From Guillardia theta CCMP2712 (lineage: Eukaryota > Protista > Cryptophyta): a stretch of DNA of 64,000 nt. Under the pieces are notes generated by a model, which did not search any database, was not told the DNA's origin, and worked only from the letters and a program-made list of their open reading frames with translations. Shown here piece by piece: positions 6,529 to 63,849 of this stretch. The stretch lies in the NCBI RefSeq assembly GCF_000315625.1, contig NW_005434577.1, forward strand, positions 160,147-224,146, in the 5' to 3' direction. The position numbers and the translations under genes are program-made. Every line of letters starts with the position of its first letter. Position 1 is the stretch's first letter.

Positions 6529-7792
6529 CTCGACTCACGTCGGATCAGGTCGACGCTATGGGCGGGCAGCAGAGTCAGCATTATCGTCTCTTCCAGCAGT
6601 ACTGCAGTGAAGCCTACATCATCTTGCGTCGACGAGCAGAGTTCTTCATCAACCTGATGATGCTGATGAAGGTGACGGAGACGAAGAGGAAGGAAGAGGA
6701 GGAGGAGCAAGAGGACGAGGACGAGGAATGAGAAGAAGGGGCAAGAGAGAGAGCGAGGGAGCAGCAGTGGTGTAGTAGTGGGAGGAGGAGGACAAGGAAT
6801 GGAACGGACGAAGGCGAGGGAGAGAAAGAGACGGAGGAGAAAAGAGATCAGCGGGCAGAGCAGGAGAGCGACCCAGAAATTTTGTTTGAGGACGATGATG
6901 AGGAGCAGGATGTGAAGGGACCACGAGGGACCTCTTGGAGCTGAGCATGACGATGATGATGAGGGAGAGCGAGACGTAAGAGGTATCGTTGACGATGGTG
7001 ATGGTTGAGTCTTGTTGCTGTACTCACAGCTTGTCGATGATGTTGCTCGTCAGCGTCTGCCTGACTGACTCTCTCTCAGGACGCCAACATCCCGGACATC
7101 TCAGGGGTGCCAGGAAGGTAAAGACTTGCTGCTGCTAGACGAGAGGTCTTGTCACGTGTCGTCGCAGACCTGAAGACCCTGAGCGACAACTGTACAAGGT
7201 GAGGCTCTGGTGGGAGGGGCGGAGGGGCGGAGGGCATGGCGTCAGCGTCAGTGAGGGACTTGGCAGTTCTGGGAGAGGTTTCACCTGGAGATGTCCAACG
7301 AAGAAGCTTACAACCACATGCAGGCGAGAGACGAGGAGGAAGAGCAGGAGCGAGAAGCAGAGACGGGGAGGAAGAGCAGGAGCGAGAAGCAGAGACGGGG
7401 AGAGAGCAGAGGAAGGGAAGCAGAGACGAGGAGAGAGCAGGGGAAGGGAAGGGAGGGGCAAGAGGAAGGGAGGCAAGGAAGGAAGGGAGGGAGAGATGAG
7501 AGTGCAGGGAAGGGAAGTGACTCAAGGGAAGGGGTAGAGGGGAGGGAGGAAAGGGGAAGAAGACGNNNNNNNNNNNNNNNNNNNNNNNNNNNNNNNNNNN
7601 NNNNNNNNNNNNNNNNNNNNNNNNNNNNNNNNNNNNNNNNNNNNNNNNNNNNNNNNNNNNNNNNNGATCTATCAAAGTCAGACAGCGTTTGTACCTCAGG
7701 TCAGCTGGGTCGCGAGGAAAGGATGAGAGTGACGAGGGTTGCAGATGGTGGAATGGGCGCACAAGCTGAAACAAGACTACTGGACTGCATGA
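5652..7792 (+). CDS. VPS34: Vps34 class III PI3K, copy A (exons 6-14 only; 5' part lost in gap)
   Basis: Exons [21 protein letters not shown]|[10 protein letters not shown]|[25 protein letters not shown]|...|[15 protein letters not shown]; stop 7790-7792. Confidence 0.88.
5990..6202. repeat. (CAT)n microsatellite in Vps34 intron 7
   Basis: Direct reading; length differs among copies (also ~20007-20294, 32108-32451, 47478-47797, 62122-62303). Confidence 0.92.
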
Positions 7793-8144: not shown

Positions 8145-10064
8145 TCAATCGACCTCCACGGATCTCTCCAGCACATACAAGTAGAACAAGACCTCCTGAC
8201 CACCTTGAAGGTCAGTCTTATTTCGAAGATGCTCTTCGATCTTATCCATCCCCTCCTCCCATGACACCGACGGGTCCAAGCACCCATCGATCACCTTGCT
8301 CCATATCTCCAATGCTTCATCTCGCTCATCTGGGTCTGATATCACTCTGCGCATCTCCTTGCTGATCGTGTAGTCCAAGATCGCAATGAGCAGCTTGTCG
8401 TCCGATATGCTGCGACCTGTCTGACTTGCCTTCCATGCTTCGAACGACGGCGACGAGATCTTGTTCCGTCCAATGTACTCCAGCACGTCCTTGACCAGCT
8501 CGGGGCCTGCTATAAATTCGTCCATACACGAATAGAAGTATGCCAGCAGCCTCCGGGTAGAGAACCGCGTATCCTCATATCGCAGAAAGCACATTAGCAC
8601 GATCGAGCACACCCTCCACCGCGGACTATCCGCTCGCTGCTCTCCAAGGAAATACTTCACCGCCTTCATCGCCTTGTCTCTGAAAGACTTGGCGTCCTCA
8701 GGGCTGTAAGCCAGCACGTACGTGTCTGCCTTGGACGTGTCTGTGAGGGGAGGATAGCTCGATACGACATCCTTGGCAGCATGCAGTGCAGCTGTACTGC
8801 TCCTGATGTCTCTCAGAGCCTCGCCGTCGCTCACCAGGCAGAAGCCTTCCGGAATGTCATAAATGTTCATCAATACACAAGGTTGTGACTCTTTGCATCT
8901 CCTCGCACAGTCTAGTAAGACGCTGTCAAGCGGTCTGTTGCAAGCGAACATCCCTGTCTCTGCATCCAGAAGCGACTCAAACAGCTTCGACTCGTCGCTT
9001 GCTGTCTTGCCCTTGCCGCATGTCAGCAGCAGAGTCCAATGCTTGGGCAGCGCCTTCACTTCCGGATCTTGCGGCAGACCTTCTGGCACTCCCTCGATCT
9101 CGTCCCGACCAGCGTCTATGACCACAAGCACCCTCGGATGATATCCTGATACGTCTTGCTCGAAGTCCCTGAAGAACNNNNNNNNNNNNNNNNNNNNNNN
9201 NNNNNNNNNNNNNNNNNNNNNNNNNNNNNNNNNNNNNNNNNNNNNNNNNNNNNNNNNNNNNNNNNNNNNNNNNNNNNNNNNNNNNNNNNNNNNNNNNNNN
9301 NNNNNNNNNNNNNNNNNNNNNNNNNNNNNNNNNNNNNNNNNNNNNNNNNNNNNNNNNNNNNNNNNNNNNNNNNNNNNNNNNNNNNNNNNNNNNNNNNNNN
9401 NNNNNNNNNNNNNNNNNNNNNNNNNNNNNNNNNNNNNNNNNNNNNNNNNNNNNNNNNNNNNNNNNNNNNNNNNNNNNNNNNNNNNNNNNNNNNNNNNNNN
9501 NNNNNNNNNNNNNNNNNNNNNNNNNNNNNNNNNNNNNNNNNNNNNNNNNNNNNNNNNNNNNNNNNNNNNNNNNNNNNNNNNNNNNNNNNNNNNNNNNNNN
9601 NNNNNNNNNNNNNNNNNNNNNNNNNNNNNNNNNNNNNNNNNNNNNNNNNNNNNNNNNNNNNNNNNNNNNNNNNNNNNNNNNNNNNNNNNNNNNNNNNNNN
9701 NNNNNNNNNNNNNNNNNNNNNNNNNNNNNNNNNNNNNNNNNNNNNNNNNNNNNNNNNNNNNNNNNNNNNNNNNNNNNNNNNNNNNNCCGCCTCCTCCCTC
9801 GCCAAGCAAGACGGCTTGATCCGCCTTGCGTGTCTCTTGTCTCGTGCTGCTGTCAGAGCCTCTCCCTCTTCTCCTCTCTATCGCTTTCATCCTAGCACGA
9901 GTCAAGCTCCCGCCTGTCGCCCGGCCCGAGACAGCCTCGTCCTTGCTACGAGCCCCCCAGCTCTCTGAGGTCATGACGTGCAGGCAGAGCTCGTCATCCG
10001 GCCGCTCCTCCTCTCTGAAGCACAGGAGCCGCTCCAGGAGCGAGTCTTGGCCCTCCAGGTCGAT
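8145..10064 (-). CDS. C-terminally truncated caspase-like module (exon 1 and exon 2 pieces, gapped), ends ERSVEVD*
   Basis: Paralog of 14191-16645. Reads VLVVIDAGR where the others have DACR. Tail-to-tail with Vps34 copy A. Confidence 0.7.
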   Translation of the reverse strand: MDLEGQDSLLERLLCFREEERPDDELCLHVMTSESWGARSKDEAVSGRATGGSLTRARMKAIERRRGRGSDSSTRQETRKADQAVLLGEGGGXXXXXXXXXXXXXXXXXXXXXXXXXXXXXXXXXXXXXXXXXXXXXXXXXXXXXXXXXXXXXXXXXXXXXXXXXXXXXXXXXXXXXXXXXXXXXXXXXXXXXXXXXXXXXXXXXXXXXXXXXXXXXXXXXXXXXXXXXXXXXXXXXXXXXXXXXXXXXXXXXXXXXXXXXXXXXXXXXXXXXXXXXXXXXXXXXXXXXXXXXXXXFFRDFEQDVSGYHPRVLVVIDAGRDEIEGVPEGLPQDPEVKALPKHWTLLLTCGKGKTASDESKLFESLLDAETGMFACNRPLDSVLLDCARRCKESQPCVLMNIYDIPEGFCLVSDGEALRDIRSSTAALHAAKDVVSSYPPLTDTSKADTYVLAYSPEDAKSFRDKAMKAVKYFLGEQRADSPRWRVCSIVLMCFLRYEDTRFSTRRLLAYFYSCMDEFIAGPELVKDVLEYIGRNKISSPSFEAWKASQTGRSISDDKLLIAILDYTISKEMRRVISDPDERDEALEIWSKVIDGCLDPSVSWEEGMDKIEEHLRNKTDLQGGQEVLFYLYVLERSVEVD

Positions 10065-10647: not shown

Positions 10648-11545
10648 GCCCTTCCCTGCTCGCCATGTGCGCGCATGTCCTCCCGTACACGGTCCCGGCT
10701 GACGCGAGCAGCCGTCCCCGGCCCCCTACCTCCCTCAAGTACCGTACCGCCTCTACATGCCCTCCCTCGCTCGCCATGTGCGCGCATGTCCTCTCTTGAT
10801 TGTCCGGCTGGGCGAGCAGCTCCCGGCCCCCTACCTCCCCCAAGTACCGTACCGCCTCTACGTGCCCTCCCTCGCTCGCCATGTGCGCGCATGTCCTCCC
10901 TTGACTGTCCGGCTGCCCCAGCAGCTCCCGGCCCCCTACCTCCCCCAAGTACCGTACCGCCTCCAAGTGCCCTCCCTCGCTCGCCATGTGCGCGCATGTC
11001 CTCCCTTCCTTGTCCGGCTGGGCGAGCAGCTCCCGGCCCCCTACCTCCCCCAAGTACCGTACCGCCTCTACATGCCCTCCCATGCTCGCCCAGTGCGCGC
11101 ATGTCCTCCCTTGGTTGTCCGCCTGCGCGAGCAGCTCCCGGCCCCCTACCTCCCCCAAGTACCGTACCGTCTCCAAGTGCCCTCCCAAGCTCGCCCAGTG
11201 CGCGCAGTTCAATCCGTTCTCGTCCGGCTGGGCGAGCAGCTCCCGGCCCCCTACCTCCCCCAAGTACCGTACCGCCTCCAAGTGCCCTCCCATGCTCGCC
11301 AAGTGCGCGCAGGTCCTCCCTTCCTTGTCCGGCTGGGCGAGCAGCTCCCGGCCCCCTACCTCCCCCAAGTACCGTATCCCCTCTACATGCCCTGTTTGAA
11401 ATGCCAAGTGCGCGCATGTCGTGCCCTCCTTGTCCGGCTGGGCGAGCAGCTCCCGGCCCCCTACCTCCCCCAAGTACCGTACCGCCTCTACATGCCCTTC
11501 CTCACACGCCGAGTGCGCGCATGTCCGCCGGTTCCTGTTCGTCGT
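10648..11545 (-). repeat. 105-bp coding tandem repeat (35-aa ankyrin), at least 9 units
   Basis: DxxGxTCAHxAxxxGHVEAVRYLGEVGGRELLAQP. Confidence 0.93.
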
Positions 11546-36767: not shown

Positions 36768-39700
36768 CTACACCTCCAAGTACCGTAGCGCCTCTACATG
36801 CCCTCCCTCCTTCGCCAAGTGCGCGCATGTCCTCCCGTCCTTGGCCAGTTTCGCCAGCAGCTCCCGGCCCCCTACCTCCCCCAGGTACTTCAGCGCCTCT
36901 ACATGTCCTTTCTGACTTGCCCAGTGCGCGCATGTCCAGCCTTCATTGTCCTGCTGGGCCAGCAGCTCGCGGCCCCCTACCTCCCTCAGGTACTTCAGCG
37001 CCTCTACATGCCCTCCCTCGCCCGCCTCGTGCGCGCATGTCCTTCCGCGCTTGTCCTGCTGGGCGAGCAGCTCGCGGCCCCCTACCTCCCCCAGGTACTT
37101 CAGCGCCTCTACATGCCCCTCTTGACTTGCCCAGTGCGCGCATGTCCAGCCATCGTTATCCGGCTGGGCCAGCAGCTCGCGGCCCCCTACCTCCCCGAGG
37201 TACTTCAGCGCCTCTACATGCCCTCCCTCGCCCGCCTCGTGCGCGCATGTGAAGCCGTCCACGTCCGGCTGGGCCAGCAGCTCGCGGCCCCCTACCTTTC
37301 CCAGGTACTTCAGCGCCTCTACATGCCCTTGCTTGCTCGCCAAGTGCGCGCATGTCCTTCCTTGATTGTCCGGCTGGGCCAGCAGCTCGCGGCCCCCTAC
37401 CTCCCCCAGGTACTTCAGCGCCTCTACATGCCCTCCCTCGCCCGCCTCGTGCGCGCATGTGCAGCCTTCGTTGTCCGGCTGGGCCAGCAGCTCGCGGCCC
37501 CCTACCTTTCCCAGGTACTTCAGCGCCTCTACATGCCCTCGCTCGCCCGCCTCGTGCGCGCATGTCCTTCCTTGATTGTCCGGCTGGGCCAGCAGCTCGC
37601 GGCCCCCTACCTCCCCCAGGTACTTCAGCGCCTCTACATGCCCTCCCTCGCCCGCCTCGTGCGCGCATGTGAAGCCGTCCATGTCCGGCTGAGCGAGCAG
37701 CTCGCGGCCCCCTACCTTTCCCAGGTACTTCAGCGCCTCTACATGCCCTCCTGCGCAAGCCAAGTGCGCGCATGTCCTTCCTTGATTGTCCGGCTGGGCC
37801 AGCAGCTCGCGGCCCCCTACCTCCCCCAGGTACTTCAGCGCCTCTACATGCCCTCCCTCGCCCGCCTCGTGCAAGCATGTCCTTCCTCGATTGTCCGGCT
37901 GGGCCAGCAGCTCGCGGCCCCCTACCTTTCCCAGGTACTTCAGCGCCTCTACATGCCCTCCTGCGCTCGCTAAATTGGTACAATGTCTTCCTTGTGGACC
38001 TGGTTGTGCCAGCAGCTCGCGGCCCCCTACCTTTCCCAGGTACTTCAGCGCCTCTACATGCCCTCCCTCGCTGAGTAAATGTGCACATGTCCAGCCCTGA
38101 TTGTCCGGCTGGGCCAGCAGCTCGCGGCCCCCTACTTCCCCCAGGTACTTCAGCGCCTCTACATGCCCTGCACCGCAAGACAAGTGCGCGCATGTCCTTC
38201 CATCAATGTCCGGCTGGGCCAGCAGCTCGCGGCCCCCTACCTCCCCGAGGTACTTCAGCGCCTCTACATGCCCTCCTGCGCTTGCCAAATAACAACATGT
38301 CCAGCCTTCATGGTCCGGTAGCGCCAGCAGCTCGCGGCCCCCTACCTCCCCCAGGTACTTCAGCGCCTCTACATGCCCTCTCTCACTTGCCCAGTGCGCG
38401 CATGTCCTTCCTTGATTGTCCGGCTGGGCCAGCAGCTCGCGGCCCCCTACTTCCCCCAGGTACTTCAGCGCCTCTACATGCCCTCCCTCGCCCGCCAAGT
38501 GCGCGCATGTGAAGCCGTCCATGTCCGGCTGGGCCAGCAGCTCGCGGCCCCCTACCTCCCCCAGGTACTTCAGCGCCTCTACATGCCCTTGCTTGATCGC
38601 CTCGTGCGCGCATGTGAAGCCGTCCATGTCCGGCTGGGCCAGCAGCTCGCGGCCCCCTACCTCCCCCAGGTACTTCAGCGCCTCTACATGCCCTCCTGCG
38701 CAAGCCAAGTGCGCGCATGTCCTTCCGTCTTTGTTTCTTGTCGACACATTGGCTCCATGCTTGACAAGCATTTGCATGCAAAGTTTGTATCCTTGTCTGG
38801 CTGCCACGTGCAATGGCGTGTCTCCGTTGCTCAAGGTCTCCGTCACTTTCCCTCCTGCCCGGCAGATCATCGGTATCAGGTCTGCCTGCCCCTGCCGCAC
38901 TGCCGTGAAGATCGGAGACTCCAGCTCCGAGTCTTGTTCACCTCCCCAGATCCCTTGCATTTTGCAGAACTGCTCCGCCAGCCTCTGCCCGTCTTGATCG
39001 CCCGTATCGCTCAGTGCTCTGCGATGCAAGTCTGATATCTTCGTCATGTAGAGATCTTTCATCTTTTGTGCTGCAAGTGCCTCACATTGAAAGTCTCCAG
39101 TACCGTCAAGCCAGAAGTTGATCTTGTTCATCGCCATCTCCTTCAGTCTCGTCGCTTCTCCCATGGCCTGTACGTAGTTTTCATCGACGTTGTACCAAGC
39201 TTCGCCCCGCTTCTTGTATCTCCTCACGATTTCTTTGATTTCTTCCACAATCGACGCACGCAGGTCGTGATGATTGTTCATTATCACATCCAAGGGTGTA
39301 TCTGCCATCCGATCTTTGACTCGCTGCGACTGCATCATGTCCTCCAGGTCTCGCCCGATCTCTTCCTCCACGTTCTTCAGCAGCGCCATGAACAGCTGCT
39401 TCCGCTTCCCCAGAGTCTCCTCTATCGTCGAGCACGTCAAGTTCGCGTTGATCTTCAGCGGCACCACCCGCACCAGCATCCCGTCTGTCTCTTCCACCCG
39501 CGGCTGCTTCATCACCTCCAGGTACGACAGCGGCGGATACAAGATCTCCTTCTCCTCGGGGTACTGCGACAGCAGCTCCAAGTCCGCTCCCCGGTCGATG
39601 GCCCCGCAGCTGATCTCGAACACCGTCGGCAGCGAGCCTTCCTTGGCGTACTGCAGCGCCACCTGCCTCTCCGTCGACGTGCTAAGCATCCCGTACTCCA

Positions 39701-42700
39701 CCCCCCCTGACACCCCTCGCGCGTCCTCCTCCACGAACCTCGCCGGCATCCGCACGCCCTTGAGCCCCCGGTACACAACCCGCGACGAGGGCAGCCTCGT
39801 GGTCTTGGACAGCTTGATCACCCCGCTCACCACGCAGTGCAGGGTCGTGACGTACTTGTTGACCTTGTGCGACTCCGGAAGTCGAAGTACCGCGTTGTAC
39901 TTGTAGTACATGGGGCCTGTCAACCGCGTCTGTCAGCTCTCGTCGCACCTCTACGCGTCTACACGTCTCTCATCCTCTACCTGTGTAGAGCAGCAGCGCG
40001 ACGACTTCCTCCTCCCGCAGCCCTGCTTGCTGCACTCGCTCCTCCGCCATCAAGCCCTCCACGTCGCGGATGCGTCTGATCCCCTGCGAGAGCTGCCGCC
40101 GCATGCTCGGGTCTGTCACGGCCTCCCACTCGCGCTTGGGCGTCGTGACCTCGTTGTGGTTGGGCGGAGTGAACGGCTCCTCCGAGTCCTTCCTGTGGCA
40201 GTGCTCGTCCTCTAGCCCCTTCCACAGGTCTATGCTGGGCAGCCCGATGCGCTCGATGAGGCCCCCGTGAAACTCCTCCAGCCTCCCGAAGATAGCTTCC
40301 TCTCCTTCCTCGATCGAGAACTTCGCGTTCCCTCCCTCTGACCTCCCTCTTGACCTTCTCGCTGATGCTGCCGATCTTCCTGAAACTGCATCCGATGACG
40401 TCACCTGGACGGCTTCGAGCACGTTTGCGATGCGTCTACCGCACGCCTCCTTCGTCTCCCTCGCTAGCAGCCCTGACAAGGGAGACCTCGGGCTGCCCCC
40501 GCCGATCTGCTCTGCGACCCTCCGCAGCACGTCAGGCCGGGCGAGCATGTCCTGCTTGTACGCGAGCTCCCACTCCCTCGCGATCGTCCTCATCGACACT
40601 ACTGCATGTCTCAGCGAGACGCGCGAGGAGGTCGGCCGGCAGGTTGAGACCCAGGCAGAGCTCGCTCACTCGCCCGTGACCTGCCGTCATGTCCGAGTCT
40701 TGGGAGCGACTGAGGTACAAGACCTGGAGCGTGTCGCGCATGTCAGGAGGAAGCGTCCACCGACCTGAGTCTGACGATGACGAGTCCTCGCCTTGTTTCG
40801 CCTTGCCTGACTCGGGGATTGAAGCTTCTTCAAGCTCATGCAGCTGCTGTAAACCGACCTCAGAGTCCGCCTCAGCCTTGTCTGCTGGTCTGCTCTGAGC
40901 TTCTTGCGCGCGTTCGCATTGACTTGGGTTTCTCTCCTTCAGCTCGTCGGGTTGATCTCCCTGGTCTAGCGATAGCTTGACTAGTGCTTGCGCCTCCTCT
41001 CCCTCGATTTGTCTTCTTCTCTTCTTCCTCTGCTCGTCATGTAGCCTATCGGCCTCTCCTTCCTCTGGCTTTCGCTTCTCCTTCTCTTGTCTCTTGCTTG
41101 CTGTCAGGCCTGGCGTCAGAGTCGCCTGCTGCTTGTCGTGATCATCCCTTTCATGCCCATGCCCATGCCCATGCTCAATCCTTTCATGTGCTGACGTCAT
41201 CATCACTTGCTCGCTGGCCTCCTCGTCTCGATGCTTCCTCCTCTCGTCTAGACTATCCGACCCCACCTGCCCTCATGCGTCAGACCCTCATACCTCACGG
41301 CTACATGTACATCCGGCCCTACCCTAGAAGCCGAAGCCGCAGACGAGCCGCCGGTCGTCAGTCTTCTTGTCTTGTTGCTCTCGCCTGCGCATGGCTTAGA
41401 CGATCGTAGTCTATCGCCTCTACCTTACCTCCCCCTTCCTTCACAAACGCCTCGAAGCTTCTATACCCTCCAGGCCTCTCGCACTCCTCCAGCCCTCGGA
41501 AACCCTCTCTCAGCTCCTCGCTCCAGCCCTCCTCGCACTCCCTCCAGTCTGCCCTGTACCCGTCGCTCCTCACGACCCAGCCTGTGCTGCTTATCCACGT
41601 CCTCCAGCCCTCTAGCTCTTGTCTGTCGTTCTCTTGCTTGTTGTGATAGTATTGGAGTAGACAACAGTGCAAGAACACGCTGCTCAGCTTGGTCATCTTC
41701 AGCATCATGACGTAGCTTCTGACATGAACGGCTCTGTCCAGCACATAGAAGTAGAATAAGACCTCCTGACCACCTCCAGGCATCATCTCTTCTCGAAGAT
41801 GCTCTTCGATCTTGTCCATCCCCTCCTCCCATGATACCGACGGGTCCAAGCACCCATCGATCACCTTGCTCCATATCTCCAATGCTTCATCTCGCTCATC
41901 GGGGTCTGATATCACTCTGCGCATCTCCTTGCTGATCGTGTAGTCCAGGATCGCAATGAGCAGCTTGTCGTCCGACATGCTGCGACCTGTCTGACTTGCC
42001 TTCCATGCATCGAACGACGGCGACGAGATCTTGTTCCGTCCAATGTACTCCAGCACGTCCTTGACCAGCTCGGGGCCTACGAGGTTCTTCTTCACCTTTG
42101 TCAGGAAGTTCCCCAGCAGCCTCCGGGTAGAGAACCTCGTGTCTTCGTATCGCAGGAAGTTCATCAGCACGATCGAGCACACCCTCCACCGCGGACTATC
42201 CGCTCGCAGCTCTCCAAGGAAATACTTCACCGCCTCCATCGCCCTGTCTCTGAAAGACTCGGCGTCCTCAGGGCTGTAAGCCAGCACGTACGTGTCTGCC
42301 TTGGACGTGTCTGTGAGGGGAGGATAGCTCGATACGACATCCTTGGCAGCATGCAGTGCAGCTGTACTGCTCCTGATGTCTCTCAGAGCCTCGCCGTCGC
42401 TCACCAGGCAGAAGCCTTCCGGAATGTCACCAACGTTCATCGATACACAAGGTTGAAACTCCTTGCATCGTCTTTCACAGTCTAGTAAGACGCTGTCAAG
42501 CGGTCTGTTGCAAGCGAACATCCCTGTCCCTGCATCCAGAAGCGACCGAAACAGCTTCGACTCGTCGCTTGCTGTCTTGCCCTTGCCGCATGTCAGCAGC
42601 AGAGTCCAATGCTTGGGCAGCGCCTTTACTTCCGGATCTTGCGGCAGACCTTCTGACACTCCCTCGATCTTTTCCCGACAAGCGTCTATGACCACAAGCA

Positions 42701-43838
42701 CTCTCGGATGATATCCTGATACGTCTTGCTCGAAGTCTCTGAAGATCTTGAAAACATCCTTCATTGACAGCATCTTATCACCCATCTCCCGGAATGATAA
42801 CTCTCTCACTTTCTTAACGTCCGTCGGTATCAACATCTGATCCTTGCTCCTTGACTCGTAGATGCCATGGCCCGCGTAGAAGAAGATCACCAGCTCCGGA
42901 CACGCTCCCTCTAGCTCCCTCAGACTACTTCTCAGGCACCCCTTCATCGCGGACAAAGTTGGGTTCGAGCTCAAGACCGAGTGACACTGCGGGAGTGAGC
43001 AGAGCTTCTCATGCAGCTCCGTCGCATCCTCCACGGCCCTCGCAAGCGGCTTGAGCTCTCCCTGGTAGTCGTTGAGCCCCATGCACAGCCCGTACACCCG
43101 AGGAGGCTCCAGGAAGATCAAGTCTGCCTCGAAGCTCCGCTCCGTCCGACTGTCCTCGAAGCTCTGGGAGCGATACGTCGACTGAGCTGACAGAGCGCTA
43201 GCAACACATCGAGTCACTTCCGTACCCTCCTCTCACGCCCTCCTCCTCTGTCTACGCTCTTACCTGTTGCGCCTCGAGAAGCTCTCGTCCGCTCTACCTC
43301 CCTCTAGAGCAAGCGCTATCACTCGCTTGACTAGCTCCCGAGCACCCTCGTCGTCACCGCCTCCTCCCTCGCCAAGCAAGACGGCTTGATCCGCCTTGCG
43401 TGTCTCTTGTCTCCTGCTGCTGTCAGAGCCTCTCCCTCCTCTCCTCTCTATCGCCTTCATCCTAGCACGAGTCAAGCTCCCGCCTGTCGCCCGGCCCGAG
43501 ACAGCCTCGTCCTTGCTACGAGCCCCCCAGCTCTCTGAGGTCATGACGTGCAGGCAGAGCTCGTCATCCGGCCGCTCCTCCTCTCTGAAGCACAGGAGCC
43601 GCTCCAGGAGCGAGTCTTGGCCCTCCAGGTCGATGATGCTGATGAGGCGGGTGGTCTTTCGTTGCATGCCGGCGTAGAGCTTGTCTAGCAAGCGCTCGGT
43701 CTGAGAGACTGGGCTGCTGCTCCATGCCTGGAGGTCTGAGAAGGTCTTGAGGAGAGAGTCAAACCTCTTCTGCACGTATCCCTGCATGGCAGGCTTGATG
43801 CTGCTGCTCACTTCGTCTCCTTGCTTCCTACCCGCCAT
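36768..43838 (-). CDS. Caspase-like / ART / ankyrin protein, unit 3 (full length; 8-nt frameshift in exon 3, possible pseudogene)
   Basis: Same exon structure, with intact GHG/DACR and R-STS-ExE motifs. 19 high-identity ankyrin repeats end in ALRYLEV*. Deletion of ctcgtact at ~40590. Confidence 0.82.
36775..38740 (-). repeat. 105-bp coding tandem repeat, 19 ankyrin units
   Basis: Counted from the 1051-aa ORF; framework GHVEALKYLG(E/K)VGGRELLAQP. Confidence 0.95.
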
Positions 43839-44404: not shown

Positions 44405-47400
44405 ATGGAGGAGGAAGTGGGAGACGTGATCTTGACGTGCGACATGGAGGCAGCCGGACCTCTGAGACTGAAGATCGACAGCTTCGAAGGAAGCAAGGAG
44501 GACCTGACCAGCGGCATCCATCCAGAGAATGCAGAGAGTCTCCTCGCCAACCTGTTTGTGGAAGCTCAGATCATGGAGGGAGAGACAGCGGTGGGTCTTC
44601 CCTCCCGCACATGCTACACATCCTACGGGAACCAGTGTCGCTGGAACGACCTGCTGACCTTCAACCACGTGAGGTACTGGCATCTTCCTAGGGACGCCGC
44701 CGTCCACCTCACGCTGCGGGCGCTCTATGCTCCGAGGAAGTACGTGTCGCTGGGGGAAGCGTCGTTCAGGCTGTTCAGCAAGAAAGGACGGCTGAAGAGC
44801 GGGAGGAAGAAGATCCAGGTGGAGTTCTACCATGGCAACGAGACGACCATGGACGCGCAGCAGCTGTCGCCTCCGCCTCACGCGCTGAAGAAGCATGGAG
44901 GAAGCGTTCCGAGCATGGAGAAGCTGGAGAAGCTGATGCAGCGGTACGATCGCAACGCGATGGAGCGAGTGCCATGGCTGGACGTGCTTGCCTTCAGGAG
45001 GATCCAGCAGCTCAACAAGGACGTCGGAGACGGGACTTGTCGCCCGACCATCACGGTTGAGATGGAGAGGTGGGACCGGACGGTGATGTACGGGGTCAGG
45101 CCCTACACGCAGATACCGAGCGGAGGGAACTCGCTGCTGCCCGATCCTGAGCTCGGGTGCGACAACCCCGTCGAGCACAAGCATCGCAAGCTCGCGCGAT
45201 CTCTGCACAGGGCTCACCAGGACCGCAACCTGCAGCCTGACGCGGAGGAGAGACGGCAGATAGAAACTCTCCTCAAGGCCCCATGGGACTGGGCAGACCT
45301 GACAGGGGTGAAGATGAACGTGGAGCACAAGGAGCTGCTGTGGCGGTACCGGTTTGCTCTGACCAAGGAGAACAAGGCTCTGACCAAGTGCTTGATCTGC
45401 GTGGACTGGAATGACGAGGAGGAGGCGGACCAGGCGGTGGATCTACTGCAGGAGTGGCAGAAGCAGGTGACGATCGACATCAACGACGCGCTGCAGATGC
45501 TGTCAGCCGCCTTCACGCACCCCAAGGTGAGGGAGGCAGCGGCGAGGAGAGTGGCGATCGCGGACGACCAGGAGCTGCTCGGCTATCTGCTGCAGCTGGT
45601 GCAGGCGCTGCGATACGAGGGAGGAGGAAGGGAGGGGGGCGACAGCCTGCTGAACCTGCTCATCGAACGAGCGAGCAACAACCTGGAGATCGCCAACTAC
45701 CTCCATTGGTACATCTTCTGCCAGCAGCTGGTGGAGGCGGACGGGAAGGAGGCGCGGGGGCGGCAGAAGCACTATGAGCGAGCGCAGAGGAAGCTGATGA
45801 ACAAGCTTGAGAGCACGGAGAAGGGGAGGTCGATCATCACGGTGCTAGAGCAGCAGCACGACCTTGTTACCTTCCTGACGAAGCTCGCGCAAGAGATCAA
45901 GAACATGAGAGACAGCAGGCAGAGGAAGGTAGAACGACTCAAGTCAGCCCTGGCCTCGACCCACTCGATGATCTTCGGGTCTGCCGGAGGGTCAGCGGGA
46001 GGAGGAGGAGGAGGAGTACGTCTCAACATGAACCCCAACATCATCGCTGTCGGTCTGCATGCGGAAGACGCTGAGGTGATGGAGACGAGGAGAAGGCTCT
46101 GTGTTGTCATGGCGGTCACGAGCTGGTCGTGAGAGTGTGCTGCTGCTCCCTTGCTCTTGTCTTGATGACGCGCAGCTCATGGGCTTGCAGGTCTTCAAGA
46201 GCGCGATGATGCCGCTGGGGATCTCGTTCCTGACCAACACGCCGCAACCAGACGTGAAGGCGGCTGATCGCATCCAGTACAAGTATCGCATCATCTTCAA
46301 GGACGGCGACGACCTCCGTCAGGACCAGCTGGTGTTGCAGATGCTGAGGCTGATGGACAGGTAGGCGAGAGATGCTGGGATGAGAGGGGTATGAGGGGGG
46401 TCGTCAGCGGGGGAGAGGAGGAGGGGGATGAGTTGTTGCTGTCTTGTGCTTGTGACTGGACAGTGTCAGGGAGCTGAAGAACTCCGGACTTGACCTGAAG
46501 CTGACGCCTTACCGAGCGCTTGCGACGTCGCCCTCGACAGGTAGAGGAGGGGGAGGAGGAGGACGAAGAGGAAGAGCGAGAAGATGAGGAGAGAGAGAGG
46601 GAGGAGGAGGTGGAATGAGGAGGAAGCAAGTGGAGACTGACGGGGAGGTTTTCTGTCAGGGATGGTGGAGCGGGTGGACTCATACCCGCTGTCAAAGATT
46701 CTAGCAGAGTACGGGAAGGACATTCGGATGTAAAGGAGGAGGAGGGACGACGGAGAGGGTGAGAGGTGTGGTCAGGTTTCTTCGTCAGCACCATCCCGAT
46801 CGGTCGGGCCCGTTTGGGATCGCAGCGGAGGTAGGCGATGAAGGAGATGAGGAGGAGATGAATGTGCTGGATGAGGGAACTTGCGATGATGATGAGGGAC
46901 AAGCTGACGAGACATGTAGAAGACGATGATGGAGGAGGAGGAGGAGGGCGAATAGGATATGGATGAGGAGGACAAGGAGAACGATCAGGAGGAGAAGCGG
47001 TTGATGTCGAGGATCAACATGAGGATGGAGGACTCGATGACAACGAGGATGAAGAGGGAGAGGGAGATGGTCATGACAAATGAATAGAAGAGAATGATGA
47101 TGATGATGATGATGAGGATGATGATGATGATGAGGATGATGATGAGGAGGAGGAGGAGGCTGATGGTGACGTTTTGTTGTTGGTGATTGAAGGGACGATG
47201 AGCAATCAAACCCTTCAGCCTCTTGACAAGATGTCATTTGTGCAGGTGATGGACAATTACGTCAAGAGCTCAGCAGGATATTGTGTCGTCACCTACTTGC
47301 TGGGAGTAGGTAAACTCGTCACAGATGAGAGTGACACGTCATGGTGGTGGGGGGATTGAACGTTTGCTGATGTCCAGGAGATCGTCACTTGGATAATGTA

Positions 47401-49908: not shown

Positions 49909-51967
49909 TCAATCGACCTCCACGGATCTCTCCAGCACATACAAGTAGAACAAGACCTCCTGACCACCTTGAAGGTCAGTCTTATTTCGAAGATGCTCTT
50001 CGATCTTATCCATCCCCTCCTCCCATGACACCGACGGGTCCAAGCACCCATCGATCACCTTGCTCCATATCTCCAATGCTTCATCTCGCTCATCTGGGTC
50101 TGATATCACTCTGCGCATCTCCTTGCTGATCGTGTAGTCCAAGATCGCAATGAGCAGCTTGTCGTCCGATATGCTGCGACCTGTCTGACTTGCCTTCCAT
50201 GCTTCGAACGACGGCGACGAGATCTTGTTCCGTCCAATGTACTCCAGCACGTCCTTGACCAGCTCGGGGCCTGCTATAAATTCGTCCATACACGAATAGA
50301 AGTATGCCAGCAGCCTCCGGGTCCGCGGATTATCCCGCTCGCTGCTCTCCAAGGAAATACTTCACCGCCTCCATCGCCCTGTCTCTGAAAGACTTGGCGT
50401 CCTCAGGGCTGTAAGCCAGCACGTACGTGTCTGCCTTGGACGTGTCTGTGAGGGGAGGATAGCTCGATACGACATCCTTGGCAGCATGCAGTGCAGCTGT
50501 ACTGCTCCTGATGTCTCTCAGAGCCTCGCCGTCGCTCACCAGGCAGAAGCCTTCCGGAATGTCATAAATGTTCATCAATACACAAGGTTGTGACTCTTTG
50601 CATCTCCTCGCACAGTCTAGTAAGACGCTGTCTAGCGGTCTGTTGCAAGCGAACATCCCTGTCTCTGCATCCAGAAGCGACTCAAACAGCTTCGACTCGT
50701 CGCTTGCTGTCTTGCCCTTGCCGCATGTCAGCAGCAGAGTCCAATGCTTGGGCAGCGCCTTCACTTCCGGATCTTGCGGCAGACCTTCTGACACTCCCTC
50801 GATCTCGTCCCGACAAGCGTCTATGACCACAAGCACCCTCGGATGATATCCTGATACGTCTTGCTCGAAGTCCCTGAAGAACTTGAAAACCTCCTCCATT
50901 GAAAGCATCATTTCACCCATCTCCCGGAATGATAACCCTCTCACTTCCTCCACGTCCGTCGGTATCAACATCTGATCCTTGCTCCTTGACTCATAGATGC
51001 CATGGCCCGCGTAGAAGAAGATCACCAGCTCCGGACACGCTCCCTCTAGCTCCCTCAGACTCCTCCTGAGGTACCTCTTCATCGCGGACAAAGTTGGGTT
51101 CGAGCTCAAGACCGAGTGACACTGCGGGAGTGAGCAGAGCTTCTCATGCAGCTCCGTCGCAGCTGCCACGGCCCTCGCAAGCGGCTTGAGCTCTCCCTGG
51201 TAGTCGTTGAGCCCCATGCACAGCCCGTACACCGAGGATGCTCCAGGAAGATCAAGTCTGCCTCGAAGCTCCGCTCCGTCCGACTGTCCTCGAAGCTCTG
51301 GGAGCGATACCTCGACTGACCTGACAGAGCGCTAGCAACACATCGAGTCACGTCCGTACCCTCCTCTCACGCCCTCCTCCTCCGTCTACGCTCTTACCTG
51401 TTGCGCCTCGAGAAGCTCTCGTCCGCTCTACCTCCCTCTAGAGCAAGCTCCATCACTCGCCTGACTAGCTCCCGAGCACCCTCGTCGTCACCGCCTCCTC
51501 CCTCGCCAAGCAAGACGGCTTGATCCGCCTTGCGTGTCTCTTGTCTCGTGCTGCTGTCAGAGCCTCTCCCTCTTCTCCTCTCTATCGCTTTCATCCTAGC
51601 ACGAGTCAAGCTCCCGCCTGTCGCCCGGCCCGAGACAGCCTCGTCCTTGCTACGAGCCCCCCAGCTCTCTGAGGTCATGACGTGCAGGCAGAGCTCGTCA
51701 TCCGGCCGCTCCTCCTCTCTGAAGCACAGGAGCCGCTCCAGGAGCGAGTCTTGGCCCTCCAGGTCGATGATGCTGATGAGGCGGGTGGTCTTTCGTTGCA
51801 TGCCGGCGTAGAGCTTGTCTAGCAAGCGCTCGGTCTGAGAGACTGGGCTGCTGCTCCATGCCTGGAGGTCTGAGAAGGTCTTGAGGAGAGAGTGAAACCT
51901 CTTCTGCACGTATCCCTCCATGGCAGGCTTGATGCTGCTGCTGCTCGCCTCGTCTTCTCTTTTTGTT
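49909..51967 (-). pseudogene. Truncated caspase-like module (exon 1 plus exon 2 to ERSVEVD*) with frameshifts as assembled
   Basis: GHG and DACR present; 1-nt loss near 51232 and a deletion/frameshift at ~50320-50340. Tail-to-tail with Vps34 copy D. Confidence 0.7.
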
Positions 51968-52270: not shown

Positions 52271-53455
52271 NATGTCCTCCTGTACTCGTCCGGCTGAGCG
52301 AGCAGCTCCCGGCCCCCTACCTCCCCCAAGTACCGTACCGCCTCTACGTGCCCTTCCCTGCTCGCCATGTGCGCGCATGTCCTCCCTTGATTGTCCGCCT
52401 TCGCCAGAAGGCTCCCGGCCCCCTACCTCCCTCAAGTACCGTAGCGCCTCTACATGCCCTCCCTCGCTCGCCATGTGCGCGCATGTCCTCCCGTACTCGT
52501 CCGGCTGGGCGAGCAGCTCCCGGCCCCCTACCTCCCTCAAGTACCGTACCGCCTCTACATGCCCTCCCTCGCTCGCCATGTGCGCGCATGTCCTCCCGTA
52601 CTCGTCCGGCTTCGCCAGCAGCTCCCGGCCGCATACTTTCTCTATGTACTTCAAAGCCTCTACATGCCCTCCCTCGCTCGCCATGTGCGCGCATGTCCTC
52701 CCTTGATTGTCCGCCTGCGCCAGCAGCTCCCGGCCCCCTACCTCCCCCAAGTACCGTACCGCCTCTACATGTCCTTCTCTGCTCGCCATGTGCGCGCATG
52801 TCCTCCCTTCCTTGTCTGCCCGCGCGAGCAGCTCCCGGCCCCCTACCTCCCTCAAGTACCGTAGTGCCTCTACATGCCCTCCCTCGCTCGCCATGTGCGC
52901 GCATGTCCTCCCTTGATTGTCCGCCTGCGCCAGCAGCTCCCGGCCCCCTACCTCCCCCAAGTACCGTACCGCCTCTACGTGCCCTTCCCTGCTCGCCATG
53001 TGCGCGCATGTCCTCCCGTACACGTCCGGCTGAGCGAGCAGCTCCCGGCCCCCTACCTCCCTCAAGTACCGTAGCGCCTCTACATGCCCTCCCTCGCTCG
53101 CCATGTGCGCGCATGTCCTCCCGTCCTTGTCCGCCTGCCCCAGCAGCTCCCGGCCCCCTACCTCCCCCAAGTACCGTACCGCCTCTACATGCCCTCCCTC
53201 GCTCGCCAAGTGCGCGCATGTCCTCCCTTGATTGTCCGCCTGCCCCAGCAGCTCCCGGCCCCCTACCTCCCCCAAGTACCGTACCGCCTCTACATGCCCT
53301 CCCTCGCTCGCCCAGTGCGCGCATGTCCTCCCGTCCTTGATTGGCTGGGCGAGCAGCTCCCGGCCCCCTACCTCCCCCAAGTACCGTAGCGCCTCTACAT
53401 GATCTTCCAAGATTGCCAAGTGCGCGCATGTCTGACCCTGATCGTTCTCAGTAGA
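52271..53455 (-). repeat. 105-bp coding tandem repeat, at least 11 ankyrin units
   Basis: DxxGRTCAH(M/W/L)ASxxGHVEA(V/L)RYL(G/R)EVGGRELL. Confidence 0.93.
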
Positions 53456-58551: not shown

Positions 58552-59105
58552 CCTGCCGCGCTCCCAGCAAAGGTCTTCCGGATATATGACTCCCCGGGGG
58601 GCTGAGAACGTGGATGGAGAGGGGGTGGGGAAATCTATGGGTAGTGTAGGGATTGGGAAATCTATGGGTAGTGTAGGTAGTGGCGGGGGGGGGTCATCTA
58701 ATGGGTGGGTGGCTCAGTAAAAGGTGTGACGATTGGATTGTTTGAAATAGCTGTCGTAACATTTCGAATATTGGACAAGGCTTTGAAAGCCTAAATTGAA
58801 CCTGCCAGCCTTCTCGATGAGACGCCCGGTCCGACTGAATCGGAGCAAGTACCGGGCCCGAGAGCTCTGAGGCGGAGCTCGGCCTGCACATCGTACGTCA
58901 TGCCGGGGCAGGGAAGACGGGAGGGAGAGGGAGATGCGAGAGAAGGAGAAGAAGAGACAGAAAGAGAAGAAAGAGGAGAGGATATTGATGATGATGATGA
59001 ATAAGAGAGATAGTGGTGAGAAGCGCTGGCATCTGACAGTGATTGAGCTCTGTCGATAACCGGAACCGACGTTTCAAAGTTTCTGCTTCGCCAACGCAAC
59101 AAAGA
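58552..59105. promoter_or_regulatory. Putative bidirectional promoter, long variant with an internal duplication
   Basis: Lies between divergent ATGs; gggaaatctatgggtagtgtagg occurs twice at ~58628-58678. Confidence 0.5.
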
Positions 59106-62100
59106 ATGGAGGAGGAAGTAGGAGACGTGATCTTGACGTGCGACATGGAGGCAGCCGGACCTTTGAGACTGAAGATCGACAGCTTCGAAGGAAGCAAGGA
59201 GGACCTGACCAGCGGCATCCATCCAGAGAATGCAGAGAGTCTCCTCGCCAACCTGTTTGTGGAAGCTCAGATCATGGAGGGAGAGACAGCGGTGGGTCTT
59301 CCTTCCCGCACATGCTACACATCCTACGGGAACCAGTGTCGCTGGAACGACCTGCTGACCTTCAACCACGTGAGGTACTGGCATCTTCCTAGGGACGCCG
59401 CCGTCCACCTCACGCTGCGAGCGCTCTATGCTCCGAGGAAGTACGTGTCGCTGGGGGAAGCGTCGTTCAGGCTGTTCAGCAAGAAAGGACGGCTGAAGAG
59501 CGGGAGGAAGAAGATCCAGGTGGAGTTCTACCATGGCAACGAGACGACCATGGACGCGCAGCAGCTGTCTCCTCCGCCTCACGCGCTGAAGAAGCATGGA
59601 GGAAGCGTTCCGAGCATGGAGAAGCTGGAGAAGCTGATGCAGCGGTACGATCGCAACGCGATGGAGCGAGTGCCATGGCTGGACGCGCTCGCCTTCAGGA
59701 GGATCCAGCAGCTCAACAAGGACGTCGGAGACGGGACTTGTCGCCCGACCATCACGGTTGAGATGGAGAGGTGGGACCGGACGGTGATGTACGGGGTCAG
59801 GCCCTACACGCAGATACCGAGCGGAGGGAACTCGCTGCTGCCCGATCCTGAGCTCGGGTGCGACAACCCCGTCGAGCACAAGCATCGCAAGCTCGCGCGA
59901 TCTCTGCACAGGGCTCACCAGGACCGCAACCTGCAGCCTGACGCGGAGGAGCGACGGCAGATAGAAACTCTCCTCAAGGCCCCATGGGACTGGGCAGACC
60001 TGACAGGGGTGAAGATGAACGTGGAGCACAAGGAGCTGCTGTGGCGGTACCGGTTTGCTCTGACCAAGGAGAACAAGGCTCTCACCAAGTGCTTGATCTG
60101 CGTGGACTGGAATGACGAGGAGGAGGCGGACCAGGCGGTGGATCTGCTGCAGGAGTGGCAGAAGCAGGTGACGATCGACATCAACGACGCGCTGCAGATG
60201 CTGTCAGCCGCCTTCACGCACCCCAAGGTGAGGGAGGCAGCGGCGAGGAGAGTGGCGATCGCGGACGACCAGGAGCTGCTCGGCTATCTGCTGCAGCTGG
60301 TGCAGGCGCTGCGATACGAGGGAGGAGGAAGGGAGGGGGGCGACAGCCTGCTGAACCTGCTCATCGAACGAGCGAGCAACAACCTGGAGATCGCCAACTA
60401 CCTCCATTGGTACATCTTCTGCCAGCAGCTGGTGGAGGCGGACGGGAAGGAGGCGCGGGGGCGGCAGAAGCACTATGAGCGAGCGCAGAGGAAGCTGATG
60501 AACAAGCTTGAGAGCACGGAGAAGGGGAGGTCGATCATCACGGTGCTAGAGCAGCAGCACGACCTTGTTACCTTCCTGACGAAGCTCGCGCAAGAGATCA
60601 AGAACATGAGAGACAGCAGGCAGAGGAAGGTAGAACGACTCAAGTCAGCCCTGGCCTCGACCCACTCGATGATCTTCGGGTCTGCCGGAGGGTCAGCGGG
60701 AGGAGGAGGAGGAGGAGGAGTACGTCTCAACATGAACCCCAACATCATCGCCGTCGGTCTGCATGCGGAAGACGCTGAGGTGATGGAGACGAGGAGAAGG
60801 CTCTGTGTTGTCATGGCGGTCACGAGCTGGTCGTGAGAGTGTGCTGCTGCTCCCTTGCTCTTGTCTTGATGACGCGCAGCTCATGGGCTTGCAGGTCTTC
60901 AAGAGCGCGATGATGCCGCTGGGGATCTCGTTCCTGACCAACACGCCGCAACCAGACGTGAAGGCGGCTGATCGCATCCAGTACAAGTATCGCATCATCT
61001 TCAAGGACGGCGACGACCTCCGTCAGGACCAGCTGGTGTTGCAGATGCTGAGGCTGATGGACAGGTAGGCGAGAGATGCTGGGATGAGAGGGGTATGAGG
61101 GGGGTCGTCAGCGGGGGAGAGGAGGAGGGGGATGAGTTGTTGCTGTCTTGTGCTTGTGACTGGACAGTCTCAGGGAGCTGAAGAACTCCGGACTTGACCT
61201 GAAGCTGACGCCTTACCGAGCGCTTGCGACGTCACCCTCGACAGGTAGAGCAGGGGGGGGAGGGAGGAAGGAGGCGGGGGTGGGATGAGGAGGAGGCAAG
61301 TGGAGGCCTGACGGCGAGGTTTTCTGTCAGGGATGGTGGAGCGGGTGGACTCATACCCGCTGTCAAAGATTCTAGCAGAGTACGGGAAGGACATTCGGAT
61401 GTAAAGGAGGAGGAGGGACGACGGAGAGGGTGAGAGGTGTGGTCAGGTTTCTACGTCAGCACCATCCCGATCGGTCGGGCCCGTTTGGGATCGCAGCGGA
61501 GGTAGGCGATGAAGGAGATGAGGAGGAGATGAATGTGCTGGATGAGGGAACTTGTGATGATGATGAGGGACAAGCTGACGAGACATGTAGAAGACGATGA
61601 TGGAGGAGGAGGAAGAGGAGGAGGAGGGCGAATAGGATATGGATGAGGATGACAAGGAGAACGATCTGGAGGAGAAGCGGTTGATGTCGAGGATCAACAT
61701 GAGGATGGAGAAATCGATGACAACGAGGATGAAGAGGGAGAGGGAGATAGTCATGACAAATGAGTAGAAGAGGATGATGATGATGATGAGGAGGAGGAGG
61801 CTGATGGTGATGTTGTTTTGTTGGTGATGATTGAAGGGACGATGAGCAATCAAACCCTTCAGCCTCTTGACAAGATGTCATGTGTGCAGGTGATGGACAA
61901 TTACGTCAAGAGCTCAGCAGGATATTGTGTCGTCACCTACTTGCTGGGAGTAGGTAAACTCGTCACAGATGAGAGTGACACGTCATGGTGCTGGGGGGGT
62001 TGAACGTTTGCAGATGTCCAGGAGATCGTCACTTGGATAATGTACTTCTGAGCCCAGGTGAAGATGATGAGAGAATGAGAATCCGCAATCGCCATGTGCA

Positions 62101-62574: not shown

Positions 62575-63849
62575 CTCGACTCACGTCGGATCAGGTCGAC
62601 GCTATGGGCGGGCAGCAGAGTCAGCATTATCGTCTCTTCCAGCAGTACTGCAGTGAAGCCTACATCATCTTGCGTCGACGAGCAGAGTTCTTCATCAACC
62701 TGATGATGCTGATGAAGGTGACGGAGACGAAGAGGAAGGAAGAGGAGGAGGAGCAAGAGGAGGACGAGGACGAGGAATGAGAAGAAGGGGCAAGAGAGAG
62801 AGCGAGGGAGCAGCAGTGGTGTAGTAGTGGGAGGAGGAGGACAAGGAATGGAACGGACGAAGGCGAGGGAGAGAAAAGAGACGGAGGAGAAAAGAGATCA
62901 GCGGGGAGACGGAGAGCGACTCAGAAATGAAGACGAGGACGAGGATGAAGGGACAACGAGGGACCTCTTGGAGTTGAGCATGACGATGATGATGAGGGGA
63001 GGGAGAGCGAGACGGAAGAGGGATCGTTGACGATGGTGATGGTTGAGTCTTGTTGCTGTCCTCACAGCTTGTCGATGATGTTGCTCGTCAGCGTCTGCCT
63101 CACTGACTCTCTCTCAGGACGCCAACATCCCGGACATCTCAGGGGTGCCAGGAAGGTAAAGACTTGCTGCTGCTAGACGAGAGGTCTTGTCACGTGTCGT
63201 CGCAGACCTGAAGACCCTGAGCGACAACTGTACAAGGTGAGGCTCTGGTGGGAGGGGCGGAGGGGCGGAGGGCATGGGGTCAGCGTCAGTGAGGGACTTG
63301 GCAGTTCTGGGAGAGGTTTCACCTGGAGATGTCCAACGAAGAAGCCTACAACCACATGCAGGCGAGAGACGAGGAGGAAGAGCAGGAGCGAGAAGCAGAG
63401 ACGGGGAGGAAGAGCAGGAGCGAGAAGCAGAGACGGGGAGAGAGGGGGAGAAGGGAAGGAGAGACGGGGAGAGAGCAGGGGAAGAGAAGGAGGGGGAAGA
63501 GGAAGGGAGGGAAGGAAGGAAGGAGATGGAGAGGGAGAGAAATGAAGGAAGGGAGAGGCATCAAGGGAAAGGAAGGGAGGGAGAGATGAGAGTGCAGGGG
63601 AAGGGAAGGGACTGAAGGGAAGGGGGAGAGGGGAGGGAGGAAAGGGAAAGAAGGCGAGGGGAGGGAGAGAAGTGGGGACGGGAGGGAGGCTTGGAGGAGA
63701 GACTGACGGTGGCGCAGGCTCTGATCTATCAAAGTCAGACAGCGTTTGTACCTCAGGTCAGCTGGGTCGCGAGGAAAGGATGAGAGTGACGAGGGTTGCA
63801 GATGGTGGAATGGGCGCACAAGCTGAAACAAGACTACTGGACTGCATGA
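59106..63849 (+). CDS. VPS34: Vps34 class III PI3K, copy E, with a 53-bp deletion in the activation-loop exon
   Basis: All exons present. The deletion at ~62375 removes [14 protein letters not shown] and the splice donor. Stop 63847-63849. Confidence 0.85.

Follow-up and report, generated by a model that had tools for sequence, protein, structure and literature searches.

An ankyrin array with a near-fixed framework and seven variable beta-turn and helix-1 positions in a clustered gene of Guillardia theta

A gene of the cryptophyte alga Guillardia theta CCMP2712 ends in 19 tandem ankyrin units that share a near-fixed framework and differ almost only at positions of the beta-turn and of helix 1. 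It lies in a stretch of 64,000 nucleotides (assembly GCF_000315625.1, contig NW_005434577.1, positions 160,147 to 224,146 of the forward strand), referred to below as the window, and its units, at 36771-38735, are the C-terminal ankyrin solenoid of a cryptophyte nuclear gene. They are called array B, to tell them apart from two paralogous arrays, A and C, of the same window. The full reading frame, about 2,100 codons once spliced, encodes a caspase-like protease, followed by an ADP-ribosyltransferase (ART) of the R-S-ExE type and then by the array. The units evolve in concert and are mosaics of two smaller cassettes. The pattern is well documented; from it we infer that selection maintains the diversity and that the protein makes use of it, the preferred reading (probability about 0.6) being that the ankyrin units form a recognition surface, evolving in concert, for the ART and protease to which they are attached.

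Anatomy of the array and location of its variation

Tandem Repeats Finder reports a single array at 36787-38722 (period 105, 18.4 copies, 84% matches, zero indels, score 2557), inside a minus-strand open reading frame (ORF) of 1051 codons at 36768-39923. Read in the register D1 to P35, it comprises 18 complete units and a final one of 25 codons that ends at the stop, with unit starts spaced exactly 35 codons apart throughout and 655 codons free of stops and indels. Since relatives terminate at a similar point, the stop in unit 19 is the natural C-terminus. The units are ankyrin repeats, matching Pfam Ank_2 (E = 6.7e-101) and Ank (E = 1.1e-54) above the curated cut-offs. An AlphaFold2 model of ORF residues 331-711 (pLDDT 87, pTM 0.83) is a solenoid of helix-turn-helix and beta-turn units, with two helices per unit. 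Foldseek ranks Espin first for this model, followed by ankyrin-B and fusions of designed ankyrin repeat proteins (DARPins), and the highest TM scores, 0.78-0.79, are those to ankyrin-1 and ankyrin-B. Alignment with the canonical 33-residue ankyrin module matches unit positions 1-16 one-to-one and places the two extra residues of the 35-residue unit after helix 2; in the model, helix 1 corresponds to positions 7-14.

A sequence-only reading of this DNA had claimed that the framework of the 19 units is nearly fixed and that variation falls almost only in hairpin and helix-1 positions, and the unit-by-unit alignment bears this out. Entropy is 1.5-2.3 bits at positions 2, 3, 5, 10, 12, 13, and 14, 1.1 bits at position 25 (E/K), and 0-0.9 bits at the remaining positions. 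The seven most variable positions account for 745 of the 1071 pairwise amino-acid differences (70%), and positions 1-14 for 85% of them; codons 15-35 are nearly invariant, synonymous sites included. Diversity per nucleotide is 0.31 in the hairpin cassette and 0.305 in the helix cassette, against 0.051 in the framework. All the variants listed in that reading are present: DMDGF, DNQGR, DHEGW, DIDGR, GPQGR, DNEGC, and DKRGR in the hairpin, L, E, or W at position 10, and CAG, IKQ, GEG, SER, and SQK at positions 12-14.

Positions 2, 3, and 5 lie in the beta-turn, and 10, 12, 13, and 14 in helix 1, a placement that follows from the one-to-one alignment and the helix 1 of the model; alignment and secondary structure are also the basis on which the seven are mapped to the binding groove. 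Among them, as had been proposed, are those that a designed ankyrin library randomises, namely 2, 3, 5, 10, and 13 (PMC4308713). The same source gives 12, 14, 16, 22, 25, 26, and 30 as other positions of naturally high entropy in ankyrin repeats (PMC4308713). Freedom to vary at each position was judged from a comparison set of 53 units from nine ordinary relatives, in which positions 22, 24, 33, 34, and 35 reach 3.0-3.35 bits and positions 2, 3, 5, 10, 13, and 14 reach 3.1-3.5 bits. Only the groove-side set varies in array B, although 22, 24, and 33-35 are equally free in the relatives; the pattern of array B is thus not simply a list of loosely constrained positions.

Mosaic units, concerted evolution, and selection

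Framework states are specific to each array: ALKYLG in B, AVRYLG in A, and AVRYLG alternating with ALRYLR in C, with the final unit of array B retaining an ALRYL state. Likewise, the codon of Gly4 is GGA or GGC in array B and mostly GGG in A and C. Taken together, these states are a signature of homogenisation within arrays. The low proportion of synonymous differences (pS) in codons 15-35, 0.12 compared with 0.44-0.47 in codons 1-14, fits concerted evolution of array B.

Shuffling of repeats, also suggested from the sequence, finds support, at a scale below that of the whole unit. A nucleotide-identical hairpin, DNQGRT, occurs in four units of array B with four unrelated helix cassettes, and five units share an identical helix, HEAGEGG, each combined with a different hairpin. 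Among units of the same hairpin, pairwise differences at the 21 helix nucleotides number 2-7, near the overall mean of 6.4, and hairpin distance compared with helix distance gives a Mantel r of 0.05 (p = 0.36). Hairpin and helix cassettes assort independently. Units B09-B15 show in addition a two-unit periodicity of 210 bp.

Such a mosaic would be artificial if the assembly had stitched together units of several loci or alleles. The sister arrays do end in N gaps, and short contigs from public runs fit several places in array B, none of them spanning it, but an artefact is hardly likely: all 30 bins of the examined stretch are covered in three independent runs, and among the 71 differences between runs and window, none of the 40 listed falls inside array B. 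The perfect 105-bp register, the single framework type distinct from those of A and C, and the intact frame also argue against stitching, and the per-position pattern would survive any reordering of the units. Raw RNA reads (run X21) are few, come mostly from the 3' end, and fit in part.

Selection was assessed with pS and its nonsynonymous counterpart pN, as pooled Nei-Gojobori pairwise estimates over the 18 full units, and with omega from a partitioned Goldman-Yang maximum-likelihood (ML) model (Table 1). Dividing pN at the variable sites by the local pS, taken from their own 14-codon segment, gives 0.93-0.98 (bootstrap interval about 0.5-3.3), and dividing it by framework pS gives 3.7 (interval 1.8-12). 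That the ratio passes 1 solely in the second case is explained by the synonymous diversity of codons 1-14, which is likewise raised, about fourfold over the rest of the unit. When the three arrays of the window are analysed jointly, the variable codons have an ML omega of 1.38. Between paralogs, the cassette of the first, positionally anchored unit has a pN/pS of 0.3-1.0, with no amino-acid excess. The transition/transversion ratio is 0.66 at the variable codons and 1.9-2.8 elsewhere.

Table 1. Divergence among the units of array B by codon class.
Codons	pS	pN	ML omega (array B)	Tree length per codon
Seven variable codons	0.44	0.43	0.83	10.9
Other codons of 1-14	0.47	0.10	0.20	8.2
Codons 15-35	0.12	0.02	0.16	1.8

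The sequence-only reading had attributed the variable surface to positive selection, and had named evenly spread or mainly synonymous substitutions, with no dN/dS above 1 at surface sites, as what would speak against it. Substitutions are neither even nor mainly synonymous, but there is no clear excess over local dS at the surface sites, whether judged by the local pN/pS or by the ML omegas of array B and of the three arrays.

Several points weigh against a surface kept variable for recognition. Positive selection at the variable codons was not demonstrated, dN/dS being indistinguishable from 1 with local dS, a value that unconstrained drift at these codons might also give. Silent diversity is raised across the entire 14-codon segment, and the contrast between variable positions and framework could be a matter of which codons are homogenised, not of selection on the binding face. 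Arrays A and C vary far less at positions 5 and 12. The unit order of array B is taken from one assembly, in which both sister arrays are gapped. Finally, owing to a frameshift further upstream, the array may not be made within the full protein in this strain.

The main rival to a recognition surface is a neutral by-product, in which conversion homogenises the 63-bp framework after a recent tandem amplification while the 42-bp segment drifts, under purifying selection only at D1, G4, T6, C7, A8, H9, and A11, so that the variable face is not kept for recognition at all. Omega is about 1 at the variable codons and about 0.2 at neighbouring codons whose local dS is equally high, as such drift would give, and the variable positions are also the most variable ones in ankyrin repeats generally (PMC4308713) and in the relatives. 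Homogenisation would nevertheless have to spare one segment in all 18 units, which needs explaining, since unequal crossing-over duplicates units in their entirety and a conversion tract usually exceeds 42 bp; sequence differences between the cassettes could themselves block conversion. Drift also leaves unaccounted for the fixed state of positions 22, 24, and 33-35, the re-assortment of cassettes that have not merely diverged, and the unusually low transition/transversion ratio of the variable codons. This neutral explanation is considered unlikely, though it is the alternative to be taken most seriously.

For the recognition surface, the following course of events can be proposed. Unequal crossing-over or gene conversion would keep codons 15-35 near-identical, synonymous sites included, while the first 14 codons would stay diverse as two cassettes, one for the beta-turn (positions 1-6) and one for helix 1 (positions 9-15), each recombined without regard to the other. 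As amino-acid variation is confined to seven groove-lining positions, the solenoid most likely presents a long ligand-binding surface that varies from unit to unit. The ART and protease modules attached to it may owe their choice of ligand or substrate to this surface.

Attached domains and comparison with known systems

The 1051-codon ORF begins inside the ART domain (PF01129, 27.4 bits versus a cut-off of 22.3). YRG, STS, and EKE motifs can be read in it, corresponding to the Arg, Ser-Thr-Ser, and Glu-x-Glu that characterise the R-S-E clade (PF01129 / PF03496); a close relative, P0001, aligns with HopU1, ExoT, and C3, and the three motifs align with those of HopU1. The caspase-like domain matches PF00656 (40.7 bits versus a cut-off of 21.4, E = 2.7e-10) as well as the PADLOC caspase model, AGHG and DACRE being its catalytic His and Cys motifs, and part of its exon is 99% identical to GUITHDRAFT_122975 of Guillardia theta CCMP2712. 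No Pfam or PADLOC match was obtained for the 430-residue middle exon between the two domains. Across the intron within the ART domain relatives read LYTGPMY, and contigs of runs X1 and X2 break at both of its edges; the 56-nt intron is found in joined form in these two RNA-like runs, and this form is absent from the DNA-like run X3. A bacterial or viral insert was considered and rejected, since the introns are short and of the GT..AG type and contigs show splicing.

Relative to paralogs A and C, which are 97.4% identical around this region, 8 bp are missing near 40592 in the middle exon of this copy, about 650 bp upstream of the exon that encodes the ART and ankyrin parts. The resulting frameshift leads to a stop at 40535-40537, and at the deletion the window is matched by contigs of runs X1 and X3. 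A decaying pseudogene, in which the copy is dead and the variation marks the onset of random decay, would explain this frame-breaking deletion, seen in independent runs, and the frame slips of the sister arrays near their gaps. It is very improbable, however, as the whole array remains without stop or indel and its variation is confined to seven positions instead of being evenly spread. Changes unique to this copy also number 12 synonymous to 16 nonsynonymous in the caspase exon and 4 to 6 in the ART-linker part, with an omega of about 0.4, equal to that of paralog A. The frame break thus looks recent, and in this assembly it cuts the array copy off from its caspase half.

Repeats of this kind are best known from fungal NOD-like receptors (NLRs), which are enriched in ankyrin, TPR, and WD repeats of high internal conservation (HIC) (Dyrka et al. 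2014; PMC4986451). In fungi, HIC repeats are polymorphic in their number, and sites on the concave ankyrin face are under positive selection (PMC4986451). The class has been delimited by more than 85% identity across at least 100 residues (PMC4986451), and a 2026 study, which set it at Psim >= 0.7, found it in all domains of life and in 22% of repeat proteins with an ATPase domain, versus 5.6% of those without (PMC13449251). The mean identity of array B units to their consensus, calculated directly and not with T-REKS, is 0.86 and lies above the Psim threshold; their mean pairwise identity is 80% (range 63-97%), on average under the 85% threshold. By its pattern, array B is a member of the HIC class, and a non-fungal, non-NLR example of it.

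The earlier comparison with HET-E-type proteins is apt as far as the repeats are concerned, given the variable concave-face sites of fungal HIC ankyrin repeats (PMC4986451). Both systems have near-identical tandem repeats in which a few hypervariable positions belong to the inner helix and beta-hairpin of the concave face; in both, the repeats evolve in concert within clustered paralogs as well as between them and are attached to putative death or effector domains (PMC4986451, PMC13449251). The likeness does not extend to an NLR identity: in any exon of the array B gene or of paralog A, no nucleoside triphosphatase (NTPase) domain was found (Pfam at E <= 0.01; PADLOC), and in the absence of a NACHT or NB-ARC match in either search an NLR identity was rejected. 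A relative from Hanusia gives only weak CHAT and ResIII matches, under the cut-offs. The array B gene differs further from fungal NLRs in its effectors, a caspase-like protease and an R-S-ExE ART, in its cryptophyte host, and in re-assortment at the level of half-unit cassettes. Podospora offers demonstrated cases of both positive selection and repeat-number polymorphism; for array B the comparison covered the paralogs of one assembly.

DARPins randomise positions 2, 3, 5, 13, 14, and 33. Like them and like ANK-N5C (PDB 4O60, 4QFV), array B keeps its consensus framework fixed and varies at the beta-turn and helix 1, and DARPin chains are among its best sequence and fold matches. By contrast with designed libraries, it is natural, is built of 19 units of 35 residues each, and lacks a C-terminal cap. 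Variation extends to positions 12 and 14 but spares the equivalent of position 33, and G and C are among the residues used. The likeness to DARPins is one of design, not of family, and array B can be regarded as a natural analogue of designed ankyrin binders with a 35-residue unit and seven variable positions.

An ADP-ribosyl-transferring domain joined to a target-binding ankyrin domain is also found in tankyrase, with its ankyrin repeat clusters (ARCs), in OspC3 of Shigella, and in CopC of Chromobacterium; OspC paralogs that differ in their ankyrin domains hit different caspases (PMC12822615, PMC9239266). The catalytic domains of these proteins belong to other ART clades, and their ankyrin domains are short and without internal conservation; any link to the array B gene is a putative one. 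Ankyrin domains that recruit substrates to tankyrase or OspC3-type enzymes, together with the sensor domain of fungal NLRs, would be the closest functional models for the recognition surface proposed here.

True family members of the array B gene are the ART-ankyrin proteins of cryptophytes (Hanusia phi transcripts, GUITHDRAFT_119904 of Guillardia theta, Hemiselmis), which share the same ART, the linker, and a 35-residue unit of the TCAH type, with 45-61% identity over the ART-linker; for Hanusia phi transcripts this part is 59-61% identical. Unlike array B, these relatives have repeats that are ordinarily divergent, with frameworks varying at many positions, and high internal conservation of ART-ankyrin repeats has so far been seen only in the clusters of the Guillardia theta genome. 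Across other cryptophytes and metagenomes, relatives join the same ART to ankyrin, leucine-rich repeat (LRR), ARM/HEAT, SPRY, EF-hand, or SH2 modules. No paper dealing with ART-ankyrin genes of cryptophytes turned up in the literature searches made.

Near-identical repeats with few hypervariable surface positions are a hallmark of the fast-evolving recognition domains of fungal NLRs, and such repeats are enriched in NLR-like proteins across life (PMC13449251). The same signature is seen here in a unicellular alga, with two enzymatic domains of effector type, no NTPase domain found, and a tandem cluster whose paralogs swap the C-terminal half. A biological conflict of some kind is the probable setting; provided that the diversity is functional, the gene would belong to a receptor-like conflict system in a lineage where none has been described, an idea that can be tested in Guillardia theta, which is cultivable. 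A bolder and doubtful extension is that cryptophytes possess innate-immunity or allorecognition-type receptors lacking the NTPase switch, in which a caspase and an arginine-type ART are aimed or triggered by an ankyrin solenoid whose groove is diversified by half-unit cassette re-assortment on a homogenised scaffold, in clustered, rapidly duplicating genes. If so, this re-assortment would be a finer-grained generator of diversity than the whole-repeat shuffling of fungal NLRs.

The duplicated cluster

The window is a tandem cluster of four segmental copies (Table 2), three with caspase, ART, and ankyrin parts and one in which a dynamin-like GTPase replaces the ART-ankyrin half. This dynamin-like paralog has the same caspase-like exon. 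Against the 19 units of array B, at least 8 are seen in A and at least 10 in C, both cut by gaps. The frame change of array C follows its tenth unit, and unit A08 carries a compensated frame slip; either may be an assembly error near a gap or real damage.

Table 2. Features of the window; positions are those of the 64,000-nucleotide stretch.
Feature	Position	Strand	Evidence
Stop codon after ...RYLEV, in helix 2 of unit 19	36768..36770	-	ORF reading, relatives
Array B, 19 ankyrin units B01-B19 of 35 aa (105 bp)	36771..38735	-	Tandem Repeats Finder, unit table, entropy, Pfam Ank, AlphaFold2 model, Foldseek
Two ordinary divergent ankyrin repeats preceding the array (ORF aa 331-396)	38736..38933	-	Unit table, alignment, model
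Helical linker between ART and ankyrin domains (ORF aa 151-330), conserved in cryptophyte relatives	38934..39473	-	Relatives' alignments
C-terminal part of R-S-ExE mono-ADP-ribosyltransferase; R52, S81-T82-S83, E124-K125-E126 of ORF	39474..39916	-	Pfam ART PF01129
Intron, 64 nt, GT..AG, joins ...LLLYTG to PMYYKYN within the ART domain	39917..39980	-	Frames, relatives, contigs
Middle exon without Pfam family; its end is the start of the ART fold	39981..41266	-	Sequence, contigs
Intron, 56 nt, GT..AG	41267..41322	-	Joined contigs, frames
Mini-exon, 62 nt	41323..41384	-	Frames, splice sites
Predicted intron, 44 nt, GT..AG; RNA contigs give only an approximate joint	41385..41428	-	Frames, contigs
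Caspase-like exon (Peptidase_C14; AGHG, DACRE motifs), then helical region	41429..43232	-	Pfam, PADLOC, Guillardia theta relatives
Paralogous array A, at least 8 units, then N gap; framework AVRYLG	10648..11539 (repeat scan: 10648..11526)	-	105-bp repeat scan, unit table
Paralogous array C, at least 10 units, then frame change and N gap; AVRYLG/ALRYLR alternating	52272..53446 (repeat scan: 52272..53432)	-	105-bp repeat scan, unit table
Dynamin-like paralog	23741..28910	-	Dynamin_N, E = 3.5e-15
PI3K-like genes (four)	16928..18721; 29759..30763; 44405..46132; 59043..60836	+	PI3K_C2 and PI3Ka accessory domain
Truncated caspase-like fragments	8145..9000; 50330..51232	-	
32-bp purine-rich minisatellite, about 3.7 copies	7327..7441; 21417..21531; 33485..33599; 63364..63492		
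31-bp tandem repeat, 5.4 copies, 99% identity	2982..3149		

Divergence between the paralogs climbs toward the array. The ART domain of the array B gene (39474-39923) differs from those at 12278-12727 and 54185-54634 by a pS of only 0-0.035, the linker gives 0.10-0.19 (0.10-0.22 when taken with the cap repeats), and the cassette of the first unit 0.38-0.57. The near-identity of the ART between paralogs suggests gene conversion or strong constraint on silent sites.

Each of the four PI3K-like (phosphoinositide 3-kinase-like) genes stands head-to-head with one caspase-led gene, and the duplicated segment of about 12-15 kb carries both. Arrays A and C are each followed directly downstream by a truncated caspase-like fragment; the one at 8145-9000 reads DAGRD where intact copies have DACRE or DACRD, so that the presumed catalytic Cys is replaced. 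The 32-bp minisatellite holds the same relative place in each segment and is accompanied there by (ATC)n and (CT)n microsatellites, and the 31-bp tandem repeat is found near the start of the window.

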